Positions 1 through 20,337 of a DNA stretch of 64,000 nucleotides are shown piece after piece. The first letter of the stretch is position 1. The number at the start of each line of letters is the position of its first letter. Made by a program: the position numbers and the translations under genes. This stretch comes from Schizochytrium sp. TIO01 (Eukaryota; Protista; Bigyra: Labyrinthulomycetes), in contig SMSO01000031.1 in assembly GCA_004764695.1 (NCBI GenBank), forward strand, positions 4,874,436-4,938,435, read 5' to 3'. Below the pieces are notes generated by a model that saw only the letters and a program-made list of their open reading frames with translations, ran no database searches and was not told where the DNA came from.

Positions 1-3000
1 TTTGCTTCATCACTTGTAAGCAGTCGATGTAATAGTCTAAATCTAGTACTTTTTTCACTAACGAATGCTCATTTATAAAATATCTGACGTGCTAGATACC
101 GGATTTGAGAATGGACGAGGTGGTATGGAGGATTAAGGCAGAACATTCGAAATTTGTATCCACGCTTAATATTCATTGATATGTCAATCTCGAAAAGTAA
201 CATGCATCGCATGTGGTGCCTGATCATTATGGTTTGGTATGTCGCTCGATCAAATCTGTGTGTTTTGCACTTGACGATTGTTTGGGCAATCCCAAAGATT
301 GATTCAGACTTTGGTTATTTGTTCTTAAGTGAACGTGGACGTGGAAGTGTCATTACGAATACCTGGATTTTCAAGTTAGGTATTACATAGAATTTACACA
401 GGTGACTCATTCTCGTTTGGGTAGTGCATCAAGGGCTCTATGACCATGCATTTGTCTTTAAGATCTCACAATTGAGCATCTTTGGACGCAGGCAGAAAAT
501 AGCAAACTTTACTTTTGAGTTGTTCAATTTATATACTTGCAAAAATTGATTGCGTTGAGAAAAGACTTTAAAGAATGCAGGTAACTTAGAACCTTGCCAA
601 TCGATAGATGTGCTTAGATTTCCAATCGAAGGAACTAGTGGACAAGACATTGATAGAGTTCTTGGCGTCCCTTCATGAAACCCTAGTCAAGCTGCTCTGA
701 CTTCGGTACAATTGCCTGGTGCTTGCGTACAACTATATGTGGCCATTGCTTTCTGCAGCTCTGTAGAGCATTGGCTATTAAATTAACCTACCAGGACTGG
801 ATCAGCTCTGATTTGCATGATGAAGTAGCGGAATCTGCGAATCCGCGGACCCCTTCTCGCTATATAATGTAAATTGCCACCATAAGAATTGCCGTAAATA
901 AGGTTTGACAATAGAGAAAGAGTAGGCAGCCAGATTTATGTGGCTGCCGGAGTCAAGAACCAGAAGTGTAAATACACATTACCTACATCCAAGCATGGTG
1001 TAACTTAAGTTGATGGTTGTAGAGGTTAAATTAACCTAAATCCATCGATTATCTCTAGCACCTTTCAAGAAAGTCTTAACCACCTTAATTACTGCATGAA
1101 TTTATCTGTACTGGAATTCATTCTCCATGACAGCAGCTCGCTAACTCTTAAATCAGCCTTCTTAAAGCCTTCATCAAGACCCGTGCCTTCATCTTTATAG
1201 TTAACCTCAAGCTGACCAGAATCATCTTTCAGCAATATGACAGGGCGGACTCCAAAAATGAGAATTCAGGAGGTATATTTCCAAAATCATAAACACGCGT
1301 ATCTTCTAGAAGATCCTGTATGGTTGATATTGCATGATCAGGCTCTTGAAACATTGGAAAAGAGTAACTTTCTTGACTTATGTCAGTCATACGATTGAGG
1401 GGCCATTCTTAACGGTAGATTGTGAGCTTTGCAAAAAGATTTCAAGCTTCAACAAACGACAAATGTCTGCTGAATTGGCACACTGCAATATTCACCATTC
1501 AGTCCTCCTAAAAGCTCAAGGAACAAAAGATTAGAACACCTGCGTCATTATGCCCGCGTGTTGTTCAGCATAACTTCTTGGTTTAAAACATGCGAACTAT
1601 TGACAAGGTTACGAGATCTTGAAACATGATGTTTTGATCGAAAATTTGTAAGGGCGGGTTCTCTTAACCAAAGAAAAAAAATTGATGGAGGTTTTTTGAG
1701 GTCACATGGAAGAAGCCTGAGACACATGAAACAGCTGTTAACCACGCTTCACGAGTAATTCGAAAACAGGATGGATTAAATCAATTTCGTTCTGTTGTAG
1801 GATGGATATAAGACTTGTTCGTATAATATCCTCGAATAAGGCACTACGTATGAGCAATCGAAACGTGATCATAAGATTCATTAATTACTTTAGCTTGATA
1901 TTTCAAGATAAATGAATTTTCACGACTGCAGTTAAGTAGAGCCGTATACTTTATGAAACACAAAATAAAAAACTTGCCAGGAAAATACTCCCTTGGCGAG
2001 GAACAATAGCGTTTTGACGGAGATTGAAACCTGTTCCGTCCTCTATTTTCTAACCCCTTTCCCGCCCGCACGCCCGCGAGTTTTTTTTAGCTCAAGCACA
2101 TCAGCATGGAAAGAGTATAAACAAAATTATCAATACGCTTTGGTTTCTTGCTATTATAGGAGCTGACTACCTTCATGTGACAAGCTTAGCTGTCAAGCTT
2201 TAAAAGGGAAACTTCCTTGACAATCATAAGGAAGTGCCAACGTGTCGAATCACGATTTACCAGTCGCAGTCGTCCGAGTCATCAACAAATCTCGATGATG
2301 CTGAACTTAAATCAGACTCTCATGCAACCTGTGCTGTGCTGAGTATTTTATGGGAAATACAATAAGAAAGGCATAAAGTCTCACTTGGTTCGCTTGCCAT
2401 CCTTTGAGTCAGGGTATCACGAGGGTCTTCCCGCTACAGCAGCGTCCGCAGCCAACTGGCTACCTAAAGAAATAAATCAAGCCTTCTAAATAGCCTGATG
2501 CAAGCAGCTGGTGTATTTATATGGAATGTTTAGGAACCGGCGCGTGGTCCAAACAAAATCAATCCTAAGATAGCAGATTGCCACGATTTTCACGCTTTTG
2601 GCATTGCAAATTATACGTTGATGCTTCGACAGCATTGGAGGGGTTAGAAACTAATTTTCTTTTGTATGAATGTAACAATGTGGATTTACTAGCTCCAGTG
2701 CTGTTGGTTTCTATAATGGGACTTGAAATTTATTGGAAAAGTTTAAATCACCGACTAGAATGTTCTGAGTTTGCAATGAATTTGACAGTTAGCTTGGAAT
2801 GTATTTTCTTCATTAGGTATCAGATGATAGGAAGTTATTGTCCGAGGTTATTTTCTTCCTTGAGCCCTCAGGCAGTTCATGGTCTTTGACAAAATAATGT
2901 AGCCCTGATATCTACAATTTCTTCAATGTTTTGAAAGGCGTCTATAAAGTTTCGTACAAATATCTTTGGTTGATTATTTCCAAAGTTTTTATAAAGGGCA

Positions 3001-9286: not shown

Positions 9287-11869
9287 TTAAGCCGACACGC
9301 GCTCGAATATATAAAGAAGCCCATGCTCGAGGGGCGGGTTTTTGGACTTCGCTACCTTTCGATCATTGAAGATCACCCAGTCATCCTTGCTATCATCGGA
9401 TAGATCTTTTGACAAATTGCAGTGAGCTAAGTAGTGTCCACCTTGAGGAGTCTTGCCAAGGTGCGAGATGAACCCACGCAAAATATAATTGCCCTCGTCA
9501 GCATCATTCTCAGAACGAATGCGCTCTTCCTGCTTAGCCGCATTCTGTTCTCCGCTGCTACCGCCTCCGGCTTTAGCAGCTGCCACGAGATCCTCCAGGT
9601 CCGATGCATGACTAAACAGCCAATCTGCTGCACGTTCTACATTACCACCACATTCCTTCAGTGCCAGCTTTACGCCATCCTCCGAAAAGCCCATGCTGGA
9701 CAGCATCATCACCGCCTCGGGATCAGCTCCACCACCATCAAGCCCACTGCTAGATTTGGACTCGATTACAGGAGGATCCGTAAAATCTGCATCGCCCATG
9801 TGTTCCAGAACCCAATTCATGGCAGCCTCTGCAGAATTGTTTCCTGTGGCCAGCAAAGCACGCTTGCATCCATTCAAATCAAAGCCCATGGACGTTAGCT
9901 GTGCAAGGAGACCCTCATCAGGCTCAGTGGGCGGAGGCGGGCCTGCAGTTTGGTCAGGCTGCACGTCGGGGAGCTCCTCCTCACCAGCTTGCAATCCCTT
10001 GCCACGGAAAGCATTAAGGTTTAAGTCTCGTGGGACTGGAACGCGAGCCTCGATCTTCCGTGGTGTCCAGTCTTCGCCAACCACATAGCGCTTGAGCTGA
10101 ATAGCCAAGTACTGTGGAAACGTGCCAAGTGAGGGGACTTGAATGGCCTTACCACGGCGTCCAGTCGCAGGCGACAGATAGTCGTCAACTTCAACTGCAG
10201 AAGAGTCTCCTAGAGAGGAGGCAAGGCATGTTTCGAAAGACACCACTGGAAGCTCCTCGTCCTCCTGTTTCTTATTGTCGCCCTTGGCATCTTTCTTATT
10301 CGTGGTGGAAGAAGGCGGTGGCACGTTGAGCATGAGTACATTGCTCACCATGTCTTGGTACTTGACCTGACCAGACTGCTGGCATTCAAGGCGCTCCTCC
10401 ACCAAAAACGAAAACCAGCGTCCCGGATTGATGAGTTCTTCATCAACTTCACCTCCAGAGGCTGCATGATCCATGCGAGAGATCTTGTCCAAGACGTACT
10501 GAAAGTACTCACGAGCATCCTGCTGTTCGCGTGTACCAAAATCAGGATGCCCATGACCAAGGCAATCCTTTAACATCTTCGGGGGAACTGCCATTACACC
10601 ATCGTCTTTGGCAGCTACAAGACCGTTACCAGTGGGATCAGAGAGGCTTGCTGCAAGCTTAACAAACTGGGTCTCCAGATCTGTCTCTGGCTCTTGCGGA
10701 GCACGCTTGAAGCACTCCATTCGCAAACGTTCAGCCTCGCGATCATTGCGAGTCTCACTGAAGAAGAATCGCCTACGGAAGGCTGCTAAGGAAAAGAGAA
10801 CCTGATACACCGAATTCGCATAGCATGAGTTTCCAAGGTTGAAAAGCCCAACTCGGCCAGGTCCGTAACAGTCTACAAGCTGCTCATCGCCCTCAAGAAC
10901 AGCGGAGAGAGTGAGATTCTTATTCAGGTCAATCTCCATTTCCATCATTGTTTTCTCCGTCTTTTCCATGTCCATAATATTAATTCCAAAATGCCTCAAA
11001 TGCTTGCCCAGGTACGGGTCCTCTACCATGCAATTTTCAGATGGGTCATACGAGAAGACATCAGCCTTACCGTCCGGGGTGATTGTACCGAGCTTAACTG
11101 CCAACGGGTACTTACGCCCAGTCTTCTCAAAATGCGTAAGAGCTGCCCCCGTACCTCCAGATCCATCCCAGTTGCGCCGACCTGACCCGATGTATCCTGT
11201 GCTCAAGTTCAACCAAAGGTTCTCAGTGATACCACTTTCTTCGCAGCGCCAGGTTTTAGGATCTGGCGAAATCTTCACGCCATTGTCAAGTTGCTCCAAA
11301 CCCTTCGCAAACTTGCTCACAGGGCGCTCTTCTTCGCTTGCATCCCACGCAGCGACCTCGAGCTGTGTAGATGCGTCTTCCATAGCAATGACAGCATCTG
11401 CAGCTTTGCGGAGAGACTCAGGAAGGTACGAAGTTGCGGCCTTGCTTGGATACGGCAGCACTGCATCGAGATCTGGGTAAACTGCGAATCCATATTCCTT
11501 CACAAGCTTACCTTTGCCACCGATGACATCAGCAGGCGAAAACCCGCCTTCAACACCAATAGCGAGTTTTGTTGGCTCTTTGTTCTCAAGCATATCAGCG
11601 TCGTTATCCTCGTCGGATTCCTCGCGACTCCATTTGATGTGCATGTAGAGTTTATTGCCAGTGCGCTCGTGATCTACACCAACAAAAAGAGAGGAGTATG
11701 CTTGGAACGTGCTCATGTTAAGATAGAGACCATCTTCAGCACTCTCGGGAGTGAGAAACGAAAAGGCACATTCATCTTTCCACACGCGCGATGAAGCACC
11801 CCTCGGAGCTACCACTTCACAAGAGAACTTGGAGACGCGCTCCGCAAGAGCCTTATCCTGGCTCGACAT
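9287..11869 (-). CDS. USP5: Ubiquitin carboxyl-terminal hydrolase, USP5/USP13/UBP14 (isopeptidase T) family
   Basis: N-terminal KDECAFSF, ZnF-UBP-like NLWLNLSTG..GRR and PLAVKLGTIT, Cys box GLFNLGNSCYANSVYQVL, QQDAREY, two UBA domains (LTSMGF, LSSMGF), His box SHLG..GGHYLAH and WVIFND. Confidence 0.95.
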   Translation of the reverse strand: MSSQDKALAERVSKFSCEVVAPRGASSRVWKDECAFSFLTPESAEDGLYLNMSTFQAYSSLFVGVDHERTGNKLYMHIKWSREESDEDNDADMLENKEPTKLAIGVEGGFSPADVIGGKGKLVKEYGFAVYPDLDAVLPYPSKAATSYLPESLRKAADAVIAMEDASTQLEVAAWDASEEERPVSKFAKGLEQLDNGVKISPDPKTWRCEESGITENLWLNLSTGYIGSGRRNWDGSGGTGAALTHFEKTGRKYPLAVKLGTITPDGKADVFSYDPSENCMVEDPYLGKHLRHFGINIMDMEKTEKTMMEMEIDLNKNLTLSAVLEGDEQLVDCYGPGRVGLFNLGNSCYANSVYQVLFSLAAFRRRFFFSETRNDREAERLRMECFKRAPQEPETDLETQFVKLAASLSDPTGNGLVAAKDDGVMAVPPKMLKDCLGHGHPDFGTREQQDAREYFQYVLDKISRMDHAASGGEVDEELINPGRWFSFLVEERLECQQSGQVKYQDMVSNVLMLNVPPPSSTTNKKDAKGDNKKQEDEELPVVSFETCLASSLGDSSAVEVDDYLSPATGRRGKAIQVPSLGTFPQYLAIQLKRYVVGEDWTPRKIEARVPVPRDLNLNAFRGKGLQAGEEELPDVQPDQTAGPPPPTEPDEGLLAQLTSMGFDLNGCKRALLATGNNSAEAAMNWVLEHMGDADFTDPPVIESKSSSGLDGGGADPEAVMMLSSMGFSEDGVKLALKECGGNVERAADWLFSHASDLEDLVAAAKAGGGSSGEQNAAKQEERIRSENDADEGNYILRGFISHLGKTPQGGHYLAHCNLSKDLSDDSKDDWVIFNDRKVAKSKNPPLEHGLLYIFERVSA

Positions 11870-12370
11870 GATTTAGTGGCGATAAAACTGAGGCAGCGCG
11901 TTCGTGGGTGAGATGCAGGCTAGGCGTGCTGCCTTTCAGATATAGATTTGATCACGATTCCCGCTCTCGAAGTCACATGGAGCAGATAGATTTTATAAAA
12001 ATCAGTTACTAATGCAGATAGTTAGGTGGATACTAATAGTGGGTACGGCCTTTCATGAATTATCTTTTATTGAGGTCATAACTACGTTAAACACTAGTAA
12101 ACACATCTAAAAAGAGGCGAGAGAAATTTGGCTTCGCTCTCGCTCTTCTTCTTTATCTTCTTCTTCCATTTGTTCTTCTTAAAACTTCCTTAGGGATTCA
12201 TTTCACTCTCTCGAGCTGCATTTTAGTCTATTGGCATTCTCTCTGTTTGGATTCGGATCGGAGATTGGCTAAGGAAAATATGTCATAGCGATAGTTCGTA
12301 GCTAGCTAGCCAGCTGAGCATGGGAAACTGGGAAACCAATGTTTTGACTACGAGCTTTTCAGACAACTAA

Positions 12371-14092
12371 TTAGTCGCCAAAGACTCTAGCAAGGTTGAG
12401 CATGTCCTTGTGGCTAAGATCAAGGTCTTTTGCGCGTTGACAATCAAACATATGATCTACAGACGTAGAGCCTGGAACATGCACCAGGCATTGCCACTTT
12501 TTCAAAGAGTACGCTAGCCATAATGCAAATGGACTCACACTATGCGCCGAGGCGATGGACTCCAGGGAAGGATAACGCTCTAGTAAGCCCTTGAATGAGG
12601 TAGAGTCATTTCGAAATGAGGTCCCACCAAAAGTTTTGATTGCAATAAAAGCAATATGTTTTTCTTGGCAGAAGTTTACAACCCCTCCGAATTTGCCGGT
12701 GTCCTTTGCATTTCGTCGATCCCATGCGGATAGTTCATTCTGAACTGAACTTAAAGGAATTCCTGCATTAACTACAAGCTTGACTTGTGCCAGTGTTGCG
12801 TTACACAGTCCTAGACGATCAATAAATCCACGCTTTAAGCATGAATGGGCAGCCTGCATTAGCTCTAAAAGTTTCCCTTCTTCTGGAGGGCAGTGGTGAA
12901 GTTGCCATAATCCGATTGGGCGAGCACCACCTAGGGCAAGAAAACTGGCCTCAATACGCCTTGTTAATTCTTGCCCTGTCAGATTTCTCGGCATGACCCA
13001 TGAGCGTGAACTTGTGTCATGTAACTTGCGGTCCATACCGGCTTTCGAAGCAATAATGATATCATCTACCGTAGTAGCACCTGTGCTATTCATTTTCTCA
13101 AATTCCGCAAGGGCATCCCTTAGCAGATTTTCTACATAATGAAGGTCATTTCCATTCTTTGCATACGTATCTGCAGTATCAAAGAAGCAAATACCACTTT
13201 TCATGGATTCAACAAGCATCAGAAGAGCTTGTTTTCTTTCAATCCGCGGTTTAGGATAGTCTACTCCAATTCCAAGAGTCCCTAGCCCAATTCGTGAAGT
13301 TTTGTGCAGTGCATCAATAAGAGATGGAGCTAATTCTGACCTTGTTTTTTTTTGTTTTTTAGCTTGATTCAGAAGCGTAGAAGCTTTGCAACGCTTCTGC
13401 TCCGATTCATCAGCACGAGCTGCCATCGCTTGGAAGAGACTAGAATAAACTGCCTCGAGAGCAACCTCACTTCCGTTTGTAGCATAGTCATCTCCAGCAA
13501 AGCCAGGCTTCGTCGGGTTCATGACTGGACCCCGACCTAGAACAATGTATTTTGCCCCTGTGCGCTTTTGAATAGAATGCCCTTCTGGTACATTAACAAC
13601 CCGAGCCTGGCCAATATCGAGAAGACCTTCATTGTTAATATCAAATTGTTCCTCTAGTAACCTCCCCATACCAGCCTTGTGAAGTTCAACATTGTCAAGA
13701 TTTTCACTAGGCTTTAGCCAGCGATCACTGGTACCAACCCCAAGCGCAAATGCGTGCGACACCTTTGACAAAGCCCCGAAGTTTGTCACAAACAATGCTG
13801 CATCAAGCTTTTCAGATATAGCTTTCTGTTTCACTTTTGTTACGAACGGACTTATGACAGGTCCCATTAAGACAAGCTTCAAGTGGGCCAACTTGCTACT
13901 ATCTTCACGTTGCTTTCTAGCATGCAGAAACCATTTTACAGCACGGATCAAGGCCCCAGCAGCACGTTCGGTGTCAAACTTTGATTCGCCAACAGATATC
14001 CCTGCAAAACACAATTTGTACACTTGTTTTTCATTTTCCGCACGACTACCTGAAAGATCATCTCCTGCATCACGACTGCGCTTCTTCATCAT
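12371..14092 (-). CDS. Macrodomain (circularly permuted, plant aprataxin-like) fused to aldo/keto reductase
   Basis: The listed ORF opens at a TTG (14335); the first ATG is at 14092 (MMKKRSR). The C-terminal AKR has IGLGT, FFDTADTY, IASKAG, LWQLHH, LGLCN, SVQNELS and VPGSTSVDH. The N-terminal domain has LCFAGISVGESKFDTERAA, RWLKP and GPVMNPTKP..DDY..LEAVYSSLF. Confidence 0.85.
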   Translation of the reverse strand: MMKKRSRDAGDDLSGSRAENEKQVYKLCFAGISVGESKFDTERAAGALIRAVKWFLHARKQREDSSKLAHLKLVLMGPVISPFVTKVKQKAISEKLDAALFVTNFGALSKVSHAFALGVGTSDRWLKPSENLDNVELHKAGMGRLLEEQFDINNEGLLDIGQARVVNVPEGHSIQKRTGAKYIVLGRGPVMNPTKPGFAGDDYATNGSEVALEAVYSSLFQAMAARADESEQKRCKASTLLNQAKKQKKTRSELAPSLIDALHKTSRIGLGTLGIGVDYPKPRIERKQALLMLVESMKSGICFFDTADTYAKNGNDLHYVENLLRDALAEFEKMNSTGATTVDDIIIASKAGMDRKLHDTSSRSWVMPRNLTGQELTRRIEASFLALGGARPIGLWQLHHCPPEEGKLLELMQAAHSCLKRGFIDRLGLCNATLAQVKLVVNAGIPLSSVQNELSAWDRRNAKDTGKFGGVVNFCQEKHIAFIAIKTFGGTSFRNDSTSFKGLLERYPSLESIASAHSVSPFALWLAYSLKKWQCLVHVPGSTSVDHMFDCQRAKDLDLSHKDMLNLARVFGD

Positions 14093-14690
14093 GTGGCAAC
14101 TCTTAAGAATAAGTCTTGTAAACCCAGGCAAACTTTTCTCAGCTTTCAGATCTGGCAAAGAATATCGGCACTTGGCATGCGCGACGAATCCAATGAGCTT
14201 CCCTCCCGAGAGGATCTGTGATATAAACAAAGCAACAGAGCTCCGATGATGACTGTGCAGGATAAAGCGACGTGTGCGTCGCAACGAAACTATATCCAGT
14301 GCAGTTTGCCAGTAGCTGGTTTTAACGAAGTTCAAGTTCTTCAGAAGACTCTCCCTATTTTAATGTTCTGTCTGGAGTAGTACTATTCTACTGCCACCTA
14401 ATGACTAATGTGACGGAAAAAACTCAAGGTGAACGATGAGCCAAGGAAAGGTGATTGAAGACGAAAAAGTACGTAAAATTAAAGTCGAGAGTTACTCGTA
14501 ATCTACTGATGATAATTGGCAGAGCGCGTTGAATCGATCTTACGCGAGTTGCGCACAAACAGCCAAGCTAAAATGAAATGAAAATAAAGTGCAGGAAAAG
14601 TACAGGGTCATGAATGACCCACAATCGTTTGACTCTGTTTCTCCAACCTCTGTTCAGATGATCTATTTCTCGGATAGTGAATAGAACTGT

Positions 14691-17600
14691 CTAAGAGCCG
14701 CGAAACCCACGGTGACGTAATAACTTTACGACAAGTTCATGAGCATTTTCATTAAGATATCCAATTTCCTCCAAATGAGCCTCATCTAATCCAGCAATGT
14801 TCATGAACACGTCATGAAGAGTTGCCTGGTTGAGCAAGAAATTTGTTATGTAGCCCTCTGTATGGGCACGCTCATTGAATAGGAGCGCAAATGCATGGCT
14901 AATGTTGAAGCCGTCCCGTGGGAAATAAATGCGCATGACGTCATTGAGGCAATTGCCTAGGACAGCCTGAGCGCAAATATTTCCCTTCACATAAGAAAGA
15001 GCTTCACGGCGACGGCCCTGGCACAACCTTGAGTATCAAGACGTATCCATTTCCAAACCGGTCCTTCAAGCCTTGCGGAGTGTCAATGGCACGAAAACGG
15101 CCCTTGGTAATGATACATACACGGTCACAAAGCTCATCAGCTTCTTCCATGGAATGGGTCGTAATGATGATTGCACATCGGTAGCTCTGGCGAAAATACT
15201 GGATACACTCCCATACTTTGCGCCGGGTTGATGGATCAAGCTGCGTTGTAGGTTCGTCTAAAATTACCACCCGAGGGCTACCAAGCATCGCTAACGCAAT
15301 CGAAAGTCGACGCTGCATGCCACCGCTCAACGCGGAAACCTTACGGTCCATGTACTCGTGGAGATCTAGACGCGAGGCTACTTCATCCATGAGCATCCTG
15401 CACTCCTCCGGGCTAGCCTCAACACCGCGTAAAGAAAGTACAAGGTTGAGATGTTCGCGAGCTGTCAGCCCTTTCCAGAGGCAATCGCGCTGCCCCACAT
15501 AACCCATGTGAGGCAAGATGCGTGTCATTTGGGTCTGTACATCGAGACCGACGATGTATGCGGTACCGTCTGTGGGAGGGATGGTACCGTTCAGAAGCTT
15601 GCAAAGGGTTGATTTAGCTGACCCATTGGGACCAAGCAAACCTACAACCTCACCTGGAGAGATTGCTAGGTAAGTACTGTTTAGAGCAGTCACCCGGCCC
15701 TTACGGGAGTGATATGTCTTGCTTAAACCAGCCATGATGATTGGATCACGTTGCACTGGGCGAGTAACGTCAAACTTATCAACAAGACGCTGTACACGAC
15801 TTCGTTCTAACTTTACACACATTCTTTCGTTGACGGTTTCGTTAGGTTGACTCTCCTCCAGGTCAGTTTCACTCGAGTTGTCATCCGTGTATCGATGCTC
15901 AGGAATATGGGCAGACTGATGCATGGCATCGCAGGTTCCACAAATGGAGTGCATACAGACGTGCAACGCTTGATATATTTTAAGCACTGACTCTGAAGGA
16001 AAGGTACGAAGCCAGAATGAGGAAAAGCCTGCAATGAGAGTGATAATTGCGCCAGTCCAAAACAATCCAAGGTCGTTCTTGAAGAACTCAGAGTTATCAG
16101 AGGTGCAATTCTGGGCAAATAATAGATTTGTCGTGTTCGTGGCTAAGCTCGTAGAGTTGGCAACGAGTGTTGTGGTTCCATCGCGAAAGAGATCAAACAT
16201 TGTAATAGAGAAGCCAATGGAGAAGAGCAAATTCAAAGATGGTACACGGTCCTCCATATGGCGCTGAGCACATGTTGTCCCGGTGTACTCGAAGTCTAAA
16301 TCGAGAGATCCGAAGGTGGCAACAGAACAAATTGTGGAGTTGGGAATGAACATAACATCGCGCAGAGAACGCAACATCAGTACAGGTGGTAGCATACCCC
16401 ACAGTACAAGTAGCACGCCTCCAAAAAATGCAGACATACGGTGGTGTCGGAACAACGAATTAATCACCAGTGAGAAACCTCCGAGAGATAGTGAAAATGC
16501 CAATGCAATTGCAAGTAGCATAAACCAATCACCAGCTACATTCTGAATGTATCCGTACCACAAAGCAGTTGAAGAATCATCGATTGACAGGGATGCCACG
16601 ACGCTAAGAACCTCGAGAGAGCGTGACTCAGAATCCTCCGCAGTACTTACTACACAGCGACAGCTCGTTTCGTTCTGATTACAAAGGTAAAAAAGGTGTT
16701 CATCGTGCACACCTTGCGACACTGTAACAGCAAAGAAGATGCTCAAAGCCACAATCGTAATCACAAATATAACCGTTGTCAGGAAGGAAAACTCAGAGCA
16801 TGAAACCGACATAAAGGTACAGCGATGAAGCTTGAAGATCTGTAAGTAACCCTTGTTCATTTCGAATACGCCGAACGGAATCAACAGAATTGATACCAGA
16901 CAAATAAGGATAGAAAGAACTAAGACATCAGTTCGGAGCTCCGCATTCGTTGATTCCACCAGTGAAATCGATACCAGCAAGAGAACAGCGACAATCCATT
17001 TAGCTATAGCTTCCCATGAAAAAAGGCGGACACGGAAGTTTTTTAGAATCATTGCAGTGCACTGTTGACCCCATAGCCCAAGACCATGTGGTTTAACGCG
17101 GAGACCCTTGATCTGTAATTGGGAGACATCAGGAACGGTAAGATATTGTACAACGCTATGTAGCGGGCGGCTCACGGAAGCCGAATTTCCTGTAGATGTT
17201 TGTGCGGAGGAATCTTTCTGCTGAAGTGTTGTAGAGCCAGGACGAATTTCAGGATGAGGTTCGGAAATTGTTGAAGGAGCAAACCGTACTGACGGAGGGG
17301 CAACGATGCTAAGATTCTCTGAGCGAGACTTCATCCCTAGTCCTTTGGCACGTGGCTCGGTGGACACAGGTGGTATAATTTCTTCAGCTGTATTCCCACG
17401 AGATTCGCGAGCACGTTCTACTTCTTGCTCATGTTCTCGCTTCATTGCTGAGTCCTCAACGATCGCAAGAAAAACTTCCTCAAATGTGGTATTGCTGATA
17501 CCATACTCACGCACTCGAGACATTGGGGTCTGAATCCAGTTGATAATTGCAGTCATCCCTTCAATAAGCTGTTGGTGAGGATCAGATTTAATTGCATCGT

Positions 17601-20337
17601 CACGAGAGCTCATTAGCATTGTGCTATCCTCGGTATCATGAGTCATCAACTTGGGTCCCATGACTGGAAGCGAAGATGTAGATTCGTAGACACTTGAGCC
17701 ATCCTCCGACTCGCCAGTGTTTCTATTAACAAATATCACGTCTTCGTGTAGATCAAGATTATCATCAAGGCTAGGTCTAGCTCCGTGCTGTGTAAGGCTT
17801 AATGGATGCTGGTCGATAGGAGTAGCCATGTCACCGGGCACTTCGCTAACTTCGTCCTCCTCCATTGTTCTCTCACTTCGAGCATCGTCTCTTAGAGAGT
17901 CTTGCAAATCTCCAGAAGAAAGGCGCGGTGGGATAATATCTCGCATGACGTCCAGGGAGATGCCAAGATCGTCCTCCAGATCTTCTTCCTTATCGTCTTG
18001 TCCACCTCGGGAGGCGAGAGCTGTAGAATCTCCAGAGCTATGAGGGGCTAGTTCGGTGCTGCGTCGATGAATTGCGACAGTGAGGTATCCCGAAGAAACA
18101 GTGCGAACTTCAATACGATGGTGCTGGAAGAGAGGTGCAAAGTCAGAATCCAATTTTTCCACGACATAGTTTACATCCTCGGGGCGAACATATAAAGCAA
18201 ATTGGGTTATTGAACCATAGCGAAGTTTAAGGTCCAATGGTGTGCCTGAAGCCACAATTTGCCCATGTTCCATAATGACAACCTCATCAGCAAGTGAGTC
18301 TGCCTCCGCCATACTATGAGTACTCAGAATGACAATACTATGGGCCTTGATGGTCTCGATATGACGCCAAACAAATCTTTGGTTGATAGGATCCATTCCG
18401 GTTGTAGGCTCATCTAGTAAAATAAGAGGTGGAGTACCAATGGTCGCAAGACCCACAGAGACACGACGACGAGAGCCACCAGAGAGCGTTTCAACCTTGT
18501 AATTTCGCATGGCATAGAGATTAAGAGCACGAAGCCAGCGTTCCACAATCTCTGGGATCTCTTCTGTTGGCACCATACGAAGGCGCGCCCAAAGTTTGAA
18601 ATGCTCAGCAGGCGACAGTTCATTATATAGCGCATCATCTTGCATACAGATTCCCAGAGCAACAGTGGATACTGGTTTGCCATTGCAGAGAATAAGCCCC
18701 GAATCTTGTACTAAATAGCTGCTGAGAATTCGTATAAGTGTGCTTTTACCTGCGCCATTTTTACCTAAAAACGTCATGACACGGCCTTCTTCCACATGTA
18801 AAGAGAGCGACTGAAGGGCCTGAACTCGGTCTCGCCCTTTACCAAAGCTCAAACAAACATTTTCCATGTAAAGTCCACGATTAGTATCAACAGCGAGAGC
18901 CGTGCTTCCAGCATGCCCACGGCGTACATTGCTTGGTGTATCATCACACGTTTGTGAAAGTTTCTTGTTATTACGGGCAAGCTTAAATCGCCGCAGTACA
19001 CGCCGGCCGCGCCAGTACATCAGAAGTAAAACGCCGCCTAAGTAGACAACACTGAGAAGCACCAAATAACCCATGCTAGCACCAATGGAAGGAGCAAGGT
19101 CCCCGACAATGCCTTGATATTGAACTTGAGCAGGCTCGTCTAATGAACAGCGCTCGGCCGATTCATATTCGTCACCAACAACTTTTACATACAAGGCCGG
19201 CTCATCAAGTTGCATGACCTCTTGAATGATTGTAGCAGTAGATTGGTAGAAATAATCCGATGCGTAAAATGGGGTACCGCCATTGAGCATTACAACACCT
19301 ACAATTAGGGTCCAGATTTGGGTGAGATGAAACGTTGGGATAAAAAAAAGAACAGCGAGTTCGAGTCCGCTTGAACCACTCCCCTGTGTAGCCCAGACAG
19401 CATCCTGCGCGGATGAGAGGTACCAGCACCCATGATATTGTGTGCCATTGTCGAGCAATAAATAGGATGTGCATGCCTCGACACTGCCGCATTCATACCT
19501 TGACTCTTCGACATGACTTCGGCAGCTCATGTAAGTTGTATTTTCAGGTTGCAAAACACCAAGACTTTTATCATATGTGAACATGGGCGCTAGAGTGGTA
19601 ACAAAGTAAGCGCCAAAGAGAATGAGATAAATAAGAACGAGCACATCGGAACGCTTCGTGAAGCCTACCAGGAAGGAGACAGCAATATGAAACCCAAACA
19701 TGACAGCTCCAGAAGACAAAAAGAGGGAAAGAAAGATAGCCCCGAAGGAGACATGCGTGAAAATAACGTCTGGGAGTGCTTTCGCGATACCTGCGGAAAT
19801 AAGTGCTACAAGGAGATCAATAACTGTGAAAAGTGTCCACCACGACAACCAAAAGGCACCAAAGCCGCGTTTACTTCCCAGAAGAGCAACCAGAAGACCG
19901 GAGTTGGCTTCATCTTGAATAAACACTGTGGAAAGTACTCCAGCAATGAGAGGTCCTGCTGCGAGTGTTGAAGAGATGAAAGGATTGAAGGCATAGTCGT
20001 ACTCTACATCCAGAGGTTTACCGCACCTGTCGTACTCACCACCATTAATTCCACCTTGAACGTCAACATAATACTCGTTCACACCCCAGGTAACTACCAC
20101 CATGATTGGCGTGATAACACAATGAAAGACTGCTAAGAAAGGTCTCCGCAAAAATATCCTGGCACTTTTCTTGAGAAGAGCGAGATAGATACCGAGAGCA
20201 CCTCCAAATTTGACTGAACGCAAGTGCTTCTGCCCGGTTTCTGGGTCTTCGCAAGAACACCAACCCATGACTTGTCTCCTGCGTCGCCTTGAGTCGCTAT
20301 CAGTGCTGTCACAAGCACTTCGGCTGCTCTGCTCCAT
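14691..20337 (-). CDS. Full-size ABC transporter subfamily A (TMD-NBD-TMD-NBD); 1-nt frameshift at ~15016-15018 separates the last ~108 aa
   Basis: NBD1 has GKNGAGKST, LSGGSRRR, LLDEPTTGMDP, STHSMAEAD and GTPLDLKLRYG, followed by TTFEEVF. NBD2 has GPNGSAKST, LSGGMQRR, ILDEPTTQLDP, TTHSMEEADELCDR and LKDRFGNGY. The overlapping ORF 14691-15026 supplies the ABCA C-terminal QATLHDVF motif. Confidence 0.9.

Follow-up and report, generated by a model that had tools for sequence, protein, structure and literature searches.

A single gene in a 64,000-nucleotide stretch of the genome of the thraustochytrid Schizochytrium sp. TIO01 (GenBank assembly GCA_004764695.1, contig SMSO01000031.1, positions 4,874,436 to 4,938,435 of the forward strand; this whole stretch is hereafter the window) encodes a 573-residue protein in which a circularly permuted macrodomain of the aprataxin/APL type is joined, through a basic linker, to an aldo/keto reductase (AKR) that retains its complete catalytic tetrad. 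The macro-AKR fusion is thraustochytrid-wide, and within the one AKR clade to which its catalytic half belongs the N-terminal module is swapped, being a macrodomain in the thraustochytrids but FHA in other protists. We propose, with confidence that we would call evenly balanced, that the protein is an NAD(P)H-dependent reductase that a reader module, interchangeable within the clade, would tether to a nuclear mark associated with damage, the ligand of the thraustochytrid module being something other than classical ADP-ribose.

A permuted macrodomain with an altered cleft

With respect to the identity of the N-terminal half, sequence and structure comparisons converge on the same template. A phmmer search against all PDB sequences matched a single chain, 5lw0_A (E 1.4e-9, residues 25-224 of the window protein), which is the macrodomain of rice bHLH140/APL with ADP-ribose (PMC5087659) and which, together with 5LW6, provided the basis for the definition of the permuted macrodomain in Dictyostelium APL and the plant aprataxin-like proteins (Gunn et al., 2016; PMC5087659). 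An AlphaFold2 (AF2) model of the domain, built from 20 homologues with a mean pLDDT of 87.5, was used in a Foldseek search, a check suggested in an earlier note on this DNA; 5LW0 ranked first (E 1e-15), followed by 5LW6 (2e-10). VIA-align placed the model on 5LW0 with a Z score of 26.5 and a root-mean-square deviation of 1.7 A over 193 collinear residues, and on Dictyostelium APL (5LW6) with a Z score of 19.4; this fold match is partly dependent on the sequence match, as plant homologues were included in the AF2 input alignment. The ESM Atlas labels the N-terminal part 'Macro' with a score of 0.88, which lies under its reliability mark and provides a lead only.

The order of the elements in the sequence is that of the permuted form: loop 2 (residues 31-40) comes first, followed by the equivalent of the GDIT motif (105-109), loop 1 (123-138) and residues 186-189. 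The proteins YmdB, AF1521, macroH2A1.1 and MacroD2 reach VIA Z scores of 7-8, with model residues from about 78/98 to 229 aligned to their first ~110-130 residues. Model residues 24-77, which form a strand, loop 2 and a helix, have no collinear partner in the canonical macrodomains, and this is the signature that circular permutation predicts. Pfam returned no match within residues 1-250 and PF01661 (Macro) was not reached at E<=1; the plant relatives themselves match just profile positions 2-75 of the 118 in Pfam Macro, a partial match that is expected of a permuted domain. Thus, modelled structure and sequence alike confirm the earlier assignment of the N-terminal ~200 residues to a circularly permuted APL/aprataxin-type macrodomain, with a predicted three-layer alpha/beta/alpha fold around a central mixed sheet.

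The cleft of this domain has undergone changes at all three of the classical determinants of ADP-ribose binding. Residues were mapped onto the rice structure through the ungapped HMMER alignment, by adding 65 to the 5lw0_A chain index, an offset that reproduces both residues named in the structural report (PMC5087659) and agrees with the C-terminal end of the VIA range; a MAFFT alignment was also used. In rice, the acid that binds adenine is D175, which corresponds to E439 of Dictyostelium, D723 of ALC1 and D20 of AF1521, and the equivalent Asp in ALC1 and AF1521 has been termed crucial for ADP-ribose binding, while rice F113 forms the distal-ribose pocket (PMC5087659). In the window protein, D175 is replaced by Ala107 (motif FGALS), F113 by Ser37 (ISVGESKF) and the PGGGGVN of loop 1, the glycine-rich loop beside the pyrophosphate, by PSENLDN, with two acidic side chains. 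All three pocket changes recur in Hondaea, with Thr at the acid position and Ser at the Phe position; the Mucochytrium macrodomain keeps the Phe and has neither the acid nor the glycines. An acidic residue was sought within three positions of the D175 equivalent, and none was found in the three AKR-linked macrodomains. The earlier note had observed that SENLD takes the place of the glycine-rich loop, a replacement (of GGGGV) that both alignments bear out, and had suggested on that ground that ADP-ribose binding or hydrolysis is altered or lost; it understated the alteration, since the acid and the Phe have gone as well. Judged from these alignments, the domain would be a natural 'D-to-A' macrodomain. 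With three determinants replaced, it probably does not bind ADP-ribose as its ligand in the classical manner, and the canonical ADP-ribose reading appears less likely than the earlier note assumed.

Simple decay does not appear to account for these changes. The AKR-linked macrodomains have the motif [RK]P[GS]EN..N...H (hereafter GEN) in common with the macrodomains of protist PNKP-aprataxin proteins; it is shared by P0004, P0006, P0015, P0016, P0018 and a paralogue encoded in the same genome. In a maximum-likelihood tree, the AKR-linked and protist PNKP-aprataxin macrodomains lie on one side of a branch supported at 99/95, apart from the plant and 'GGD' forms, and the GEN variant is kept in a clade of 10 sequences. 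The branch to the window and Hondaea macrodomains is long (1.26). Between these two proteins the cleft segments are the best conserved parts of the domain, with 65% identity in residues 24-40 and 62% in residues 113-141, compared with 32-41% in the helices. Moreover, the window and the strain of the public sequencing runs differ in the macrodomain core by three substitutions, all of them synonymous, a very small sample. The shared GEN motif and the conservation of the cleft segments argue against simple decay, and the GEN loop is a conserved subtype common to protist PNKP-macro-aprataxin proteins.

The domain company of this macrodomain is that of DNA end processing. An exhaustive phmmer search with residues 1-250 over 1.84 billion representatives recovered just 19 proteins. 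The aprataxin HIT/DcpS_C core is recognized by Pfam in 13 of them, 11 of which also carry the zf-C2HE finger, and several of these HIT-core relatives contain, in addition, PNK kinase (AAA_33) and PNK3P phosphatase domains. Another three are macrodomain-bearing fragments without the HIT core (P0009, P0012 and P0015). The remaining three carry an AKR, which agrees with the rarity of the architecture that the earlier note had anticipated: P0001, which is 98% identical to the window protein, P0002 of Hondaea, with a macrodomain 45% identical, and P0017 of Mucochytrium, known from an MMETSP transcript. Hondaea fermentalgiana and Mucochytrium quahogii are the only named close relatives. Thus, outside the AKR fusions, the permuted macrodomain occurs, among the relatives found, only in aprataxin/PNKP-type proteins. 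P0002 (GBG29390.1) is, as annotated, a protein of 417 residues in which the macrodomain is joined to only the C-terminal half of an AKR; it bears the database label 'NADP-dependent oxidoreductase domain-containing protein'.

The genome of Schizochytrium sp. TIO01 itself (64 Mb in 37 contigs, with long intronless ORFs) encodes exactly one further copy of the macrodomain, within a single open reading frame (ORF) of 970 residues (G000:C13:2737200-2740112; L003 2201-5113). In this paralogue the GDIT motif and the Phe are kept and the loop reads PGENKSN; the near-identical protein P0006 contains, in order, PNK3P, AAA_33, macro, HIT and zf-C2HE domains. The N-terminus of the 970-residue paralogue looks more like a small zinc finger than like the FHA domain that animal PNKP has. 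Furthermore, the genome contains at least 11 loci for PARP catalytic domains. A search of it for PARG gave no match, and the control genomes were equally silent.

An AKR clade with differing N-terminal modules

The catalytic half is a complete AKR. Pfam PF00248 (Aldo_ket_red) matches residues 267-565 with E 7.8e-30 and 104.4 bits (cut-off 24), covering profile positions 1-284 of 291. The Asp-Tyr-Lys-His tetrad that the earlier note had read from the translation aligns with that of AKR13B2 (8hnq) as D305 and Y310 in DTADTY, K350 in ASKAG and H399 in WQLHH, and is invariant in the alignment of the clade (A3). N431 in GLCN and Q451 in SVQNE are likewise retained, at positions that we take, from general knowledge of AKRs, to be those of nicotinamide-binding residues. 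The best solved relative is AKR13B2 (8hnq, E 5.7e-13), with an identity that looks, in the printed alignment, to be well under the 40% that AKR nomenclature asks of members of AKR13; the best NCBIfam matches are bacterial models, far under their cut-offs. This AKR is single-copy in its genome and probably represents a separate AKR family.

In a tree of AKR domains, the macro-AKR proteins, the FHA-AKR proteins and a protein from Paulinella form one eukaryotic group (100/99), which is characterized by the motifs GTLxLGVxYP..RP, FFDTADTYCxDGxDLHYVE, ATKGGM, LWQLHH and GLCN. A scan of JGI metagenome contigs added the eukaryotic contig L004, the fragment L006 and stand-alone prokaryote-like relatives that are ~27% identical, and a profile search with alignment A2 at E<=1e-20 returned known members only. 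The FHA domain is recognized in P0044 (455 residues; 25.5 bits against a gathering cut-off of 20.7, E 1.8e-5) and in the ORF of L004 (30.7 bits against 20.7, E 4.4e-7); for P0038 the leads are weaker, an FHA-like module being suggested by its Atlas score (0.91) and by a Pfam match to the FHA clan at E 0.023. In a phmmer search against the PDB, the FHA region of L004 matched Rad53 FHA1 alone (E ~0.6), and its AF2 model from a 3-sequence alignment was unusable (pLDDT 34). A local phmmer comparison of the FHA regions with the N-termini of the PNKP-aprataxin proteins gave no similarity. The L004 ORF lies at 458-1873 (+) of metagenome contig Ga0115007_10003641; the protein ends in NKKRKR, and the neighbouring gene looks eukaryotic, being low-complexity and EF-hand-like. 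The Paulinella micropora member, P0039 (EP00808_P013385), whose gene model is unverified, has an N-terminal region of ~215 residues and a KRARR motif. Pfam and PDB searches with this region gave no match, and it is BRCT-like by eye only.

A motif rich in K/R is present in the tail or linker of all eight clade members. In the window protein these are KKRSR and KKQKKTR, both of which the earlier note had singled out as resembling nuclear localization signals (NLS), and the other members have RPRKRAR, KRARR, KKRK or KKRKR.

The earlier note had also described the AKR as bacterial in style. A case that the AKR was recently acquired from bacteria and then fused to a macrodomain of the host could be argued from the position of the eukaryotic clade as sister (100/99) to the stand-alone metagenomic proteins L005 and L010, apart from generic bacterial AKRs, and from the bacterial nature of the best NCBIfam models; L005 and L010 are assigned to prokaryotes by appearance. 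Identity to these two is ~27%, however, and 23-26% to named bacterial AKRs, whereas the nearest relatives are fused eukaryotic forms and the clade spans thraustochytrids, Paulinella and other eukaryotic contigs. This wide eukaryotic span implies that any transfer would have been ancient, preceding the module swaps. We therefore regard a recent acquisition as very improbable, the available sequences giving no apparent sign of it; an ancient acquisition from bacteria may have taken place.

The gene, its transcript-like unit and its neighbors

The features of the gene are collected in the table below. The reading frame is open throughout 12371..14335 (-), and the ATG at 14092 is the first in-frame start, giving the 573-residue protein; the start is shared with the homologues (MKKRSR in the window, MSKRAR and MKRDR in the others). 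All strings that the earlier note had quoted from the translation (KLCFAGISVGESKFD, LKLVLM, FVTNFGALSKV, RWLKPSENLDNVELHKAG, GAKYIVLGRGPVMNPTKPGFAGDDY, LEAVYSSLFQ, DTADTY, SKAG, QLHH, KKRSR and KKQKKTR) are present.

Features of the macro-AKR gene and protein (positions are those of the window)
Feature	Position	Strand	Basis
Macro-AKR coding sequence, complete (573 residues + stop, no intron)	12371..14092	(-)	continuous ORF; P0001 98-99% identical over 572 residues; unjointed contigs in 3 runs
Transcript-like unit	12046..14453	(-)	gene-sized contigs of 2353-2383 nt from three studies, distinct from the contigs of the neighbors
Disordered N-terminal tail, residues 1-23, basic motif KKRSR	14024..14092	(-)	pLDDT <50 for residues 1-18; KRAR in Hondaea, KRDR in Mucochytrium
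Circularly permuted APL/aprataxin-type macrodomain, residues 24-224, GEN-loop subtype	13421..14023	(-)	5LW0 by sequence and structure; tree
Loop 2, GISVGESKFD, residues 31-40; S37 at the rice F113 position	13973..14002	(-)	HMMER alignment to 5lw0_A; MAFFT
FGALS, residues 105-109; A107 at the rice D175 / Dictyostelium E439 position (GDIT)	13766..13780	(-)	HMMER and MAFFT alignments
Loop 1, DRWLKPSENLDNVELH, residues 123-138; SENLD for GGGGV	13679..13726	(-)	alignments; N134 invariant across the family
Helical basic linker, residues 225-262, KKQKKTR	13307..13420	(-)	long model helix 208-249; KRRK at the same place in Hondaea
AKR domain, residues 263-573	12374..13306	(-)	Pfam PF00248; alignment to AKR13B2 8hnq; clade alignments
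AKR tetrad codons	D305 13178-13180; Y310 13163-13165; K350 13043-13045; H399 12896-12898	(-)	

Contigs from four public runs were placed on positions 10500-16000 of the window. In each of three studies, one contig crosses both domain halves without a joint, spanning 12053-14429 (X1), 12071-14453 (X5) and 12046-14398 (X7), and the flanking contigs end at 11923-11939 or begin at 14462-14464, with depths that clearly differ from that of the macro-AKR contig. Such separate, gene-sized contigs are the pattern expected of a transcriptome assembly, and they support the single transcript that the earlier note had envisaged, with the reservations that the 'RNA' run type is a guessed label and that the contigs carry no strand information. 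In addition, the Mucochytrium MMETSP transcript holds the macrodomain and the AKR in one ORF and testifies independently that a relative makes a single message. The suspicion that two neighboring genes, or a mis-assembly, have been mistaken for one ORF found nothing in its favor beyond the guessed run type as its sole weak point of purchase; with an unbroken reading frame, the same architecture in P0001, Hondaea and the Mucochytrium transcript, and a single contig across both halves in runs of three studies, its probability is practically negligible. The unbroken ORF and the unjointed contigs led us to reject it.

On one side of the gene, 9287-11869 (-) is an intronless ORF of 860 residues that, by eye, appears to encode a USP5/UBP14-type ubiquitin hydrolase with catalytic Cys/His boxes and two UBA-like stretches; its contig is 2.6-13x deeper than that of the macro-AKR gene. 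On the other side, 15004-20337 (-) is an ORF of 1777 residues for an ABCA-like transporter, with its stop at 15004. The contigs of three public runs have one base fewer at 15016, within a G/C run of this ORF. Without that base, the frame gains ~104 residues to a stop at 14691 and swallows an ORF of 111 residues (14691-15026); in the window, the C-terminus of the transporter has been affected either by a frameshift peculiar to the strain or by an error of assembly in the homopolymer.

Candidate functions and known systems

In the tethered-reductase proposal, a single thraustochytrid gene would produce an NAD(P)H-dependent AKR of a small eukaryotic clade, laid out as an N-terminal targeting module, a basic NLS-like stretch and the AKR, with the module interchangeable across the clade. 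In thraustochytrids this module would be the GEN-loop macrodomain, of the same subtype as in the PNKP-kinase-macro-aprataxin enzyme of the same organism, and in other protists an FHA domain. The macrodomain fold is predicted to be intact and its cleft loops to be under constraint, with a ligand that is probably not classically bound ADP-ribose. The module would tether the predicted-competent reductase to a nuclear damage-associated mark, where the reductase would reduce a carbonyl. Circumstantial but independent support for such targeting comes from the aprataxin/PNKP company of the macrodomain, the swap with FHA, the basic motifs and the PARPs of the genome. The damage link that the earlier note had drawn from the macrodomain thus gains comparative backing from the fusion of the same AKR clade to FHA in other protists, a comparison that does not indicate which mark is involved. 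The data show the two folds, the permutation, the replaced residues, the conserved fusion, the swap of modules within one AKR clade and the transcript-like unit; from them we infer the nuclear or damage-site targeting of the protein, its ligand and its substrate.

A bolder form of this proposal would recognize a class of nuclear 'damage-site carbonyl reductases' that are aimed at DNA lesions by swappable readers and reduce DNA-borne or chromatin-proximal aldehydes, with a non-canonical ligand for the GEN loop. Candidate substrates would be ring-opened abasic sites, 3'-unsaturated aldehyde or 5'-dRP ends, ADP-ribose aldehyde and crosslinking aldehydes; the earlier note, which supposed that the enzyme could be recruited to chromatin, had also named lipid-peroxidation carbonyls as possible substrates. 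If this were true, carbonyl reduction at damage sites would prevent DNA-protein and interstrand crosslinks; in this full form we consider the idea distinctly unlikely.

Several observations weigh against targeting to a damage mark. In addition to the three replaced pocket residues and the silence of Pfam on the macrodomain, the annotated model of Hondaea P0002 lacks ~150 residues that include the whole catalytic tetrad (alignment A2), a gap that may stem from an intron called in error or from a genuine deletion. P0044 matches the APTX-type FHA_2 model at E 0.13 only. Many proteins of all kinds have NLS-like motifs, and FHA domains also occur outside DNA repair.

Two other functions were considered. 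The protein could be an ordinary soluble carbonyl reductase, active in the cytosol or nucleoplasm in the detoxification of small aldehydes or ketones, with a degenerate former macrodomain as a structural, oligomerization or regulatory appendage. The loss of all three canonical ADP-ribose determinants, the lack of a match to Pfam Macro, the long branch to the window and Hondaea macrodomains and the nature of the nearest solved AKRs, which are general AKR13-type reductases, would all fit such an appendage. Nevertheless, conservation within the domain is highest in the cleft loops, and the clade that keeps the GEN motif and N134 has bona fide end-processing enzymes among its members; moreover, the repeated association of the same AKR clade with FHA and basic motifs points to targeting rather than to a passive appendage, so that we hold this explanation to be somewhat unlikely. 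Alternatively, the macrodomain could present the substrate: its cleft would bind an ADP-ribose-like metabolite (ADP-ribose, O-acetyl-ADP-ribose, ADP-ribose-1''-phosphate or an NADP-derived product) and the AKR would reduce the open-chain ribose aldehyde of this metabolite, making the protein an ADP-ribose-detoxifying reductase. The apparent juxtaposition of a constrained macrodomain cleft and an NADPH-dependent aldehyde reductase, the PARP-rich genome and the location of S37 and SENLD at distal-ribose contacts, precisely the residues whose replacement an open-chain or modified ribose would demand, are in line with this possibility. However, the adenine-binding Asp has been lost too, the FHA-bearing relatives within the AKR clade cannot bind ADP-ribose in that way, and a linker as long, helical and basic as this one suggests that the modules are independent; substrate presentation therefore seems improbable.

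As for novelty, the literature searched contains no paper in which an AKR is joined to a macrodomain or an FHA domain in one protein, in agreement with the earlier note, which knew of no such fusion. Measured against that literature, the macro-AKR architecture and the macrodomain subtype are new and the AKR family is probably so, and the function is one that we infer. The Hondaea protein is already in public databases, uncharacterized and with a macrodomain that Pfam does not recognize. Permuted APL-type macrodomains have hitherto been known only beside DNA end-processing or scaffold domains, and here one is found on an oxidoreductase. The recurrent pairing of macro or FHA modules with one AKR clade yields a concrete hypothesis, open to testing, in which a carbonyl reductase is directed to damaged chromatin in some eukaryotes. 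Furthermore, a GEN-loop subtype that lacks the classical ADP-ribose contacts, yet is conserved in genuine PNKP-aprataxin enzymes, poses a ligand question for the ADP-ribosylation field. No description of the enzymatic reduction of DNA-associated aldehydes as a step of repair or tolerance was found in the literature searched, and to our knowledge none has been given. The finding would be categorically new only if such reduction were demonstrated; should the function prove to be ordinary detoxification, the domain architecture would still be new, and so, probably, would the AKR family.

Comparison with known systems places the two halves of the protein in different contexts. The macrodomain resembles those of Dictyostelium APL and plant bHLH140 (5LW6 and 5LW0) in fold and permutation, with loop 2 first, and N134, G188, P189, N192, Y216 and F220 are invariant between them and the window protein. 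Whereas the partners in those proteins are FHA/PBZ or HIT-ZnF domains, the partner here is an AKR; the ADP-ribose acid (D175/E439), the aromatic F113 and the Gly-rich loop of 5LW0 are all missing, and the window domain lies on the separate GEN-loop branch. The protist PNKP-kinase-macro-aprataxin proteins (P0004, P0006, P0016 and the 970-residue paralogue) have the same macrodomain subtype (99/95 clade). They also possess the end-processing domains PNK3P, AAA_33, HIT and zf-C2HE, which are absent from the window protein, where Pfam detects the AKR only, and their macrodomains retain F113, and in the paralogue also GDIT, at 27% identity to the window macrodomain.

On the side of the AKR, the FHA-AKR proteins (P0044, the L004 ORF and probably P0038) have the clade (100/99), the motifs and the basic NLS-like stretch in common with the window protein but carry an N-terminal FHA domain, a phosphothreonine reader, in place of the macrodomain, and are themselves uncharacterized. 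The solved enzymes AKR13B2 (8hnq), perakine reductase (3v0s) and pyridoxine 4-dehydrogenase (8te8) have the same (alpha/beta)8 fold and D-Y-K-H tetrad; the window AKR differs from such AKR13-type enzymes in an insertion after the catalytic Lys and in the clade motifs, and a targeting domain is absent from the solved enzymes. In its overall layout, the macro-AKR protein resembles APTX, PNKP and APLF, in which a reader (FHA, macro or PBZ) is followed by a basic linker and then the enzyme. This layout is established family knowledge and is also found in PMC5087659. In contrast to the nucleotide hydrolase, kinase or phosphatase of the APTX/PNKP/APLF type, the catalytic domain of macro-AKR is an oxidoreductase.

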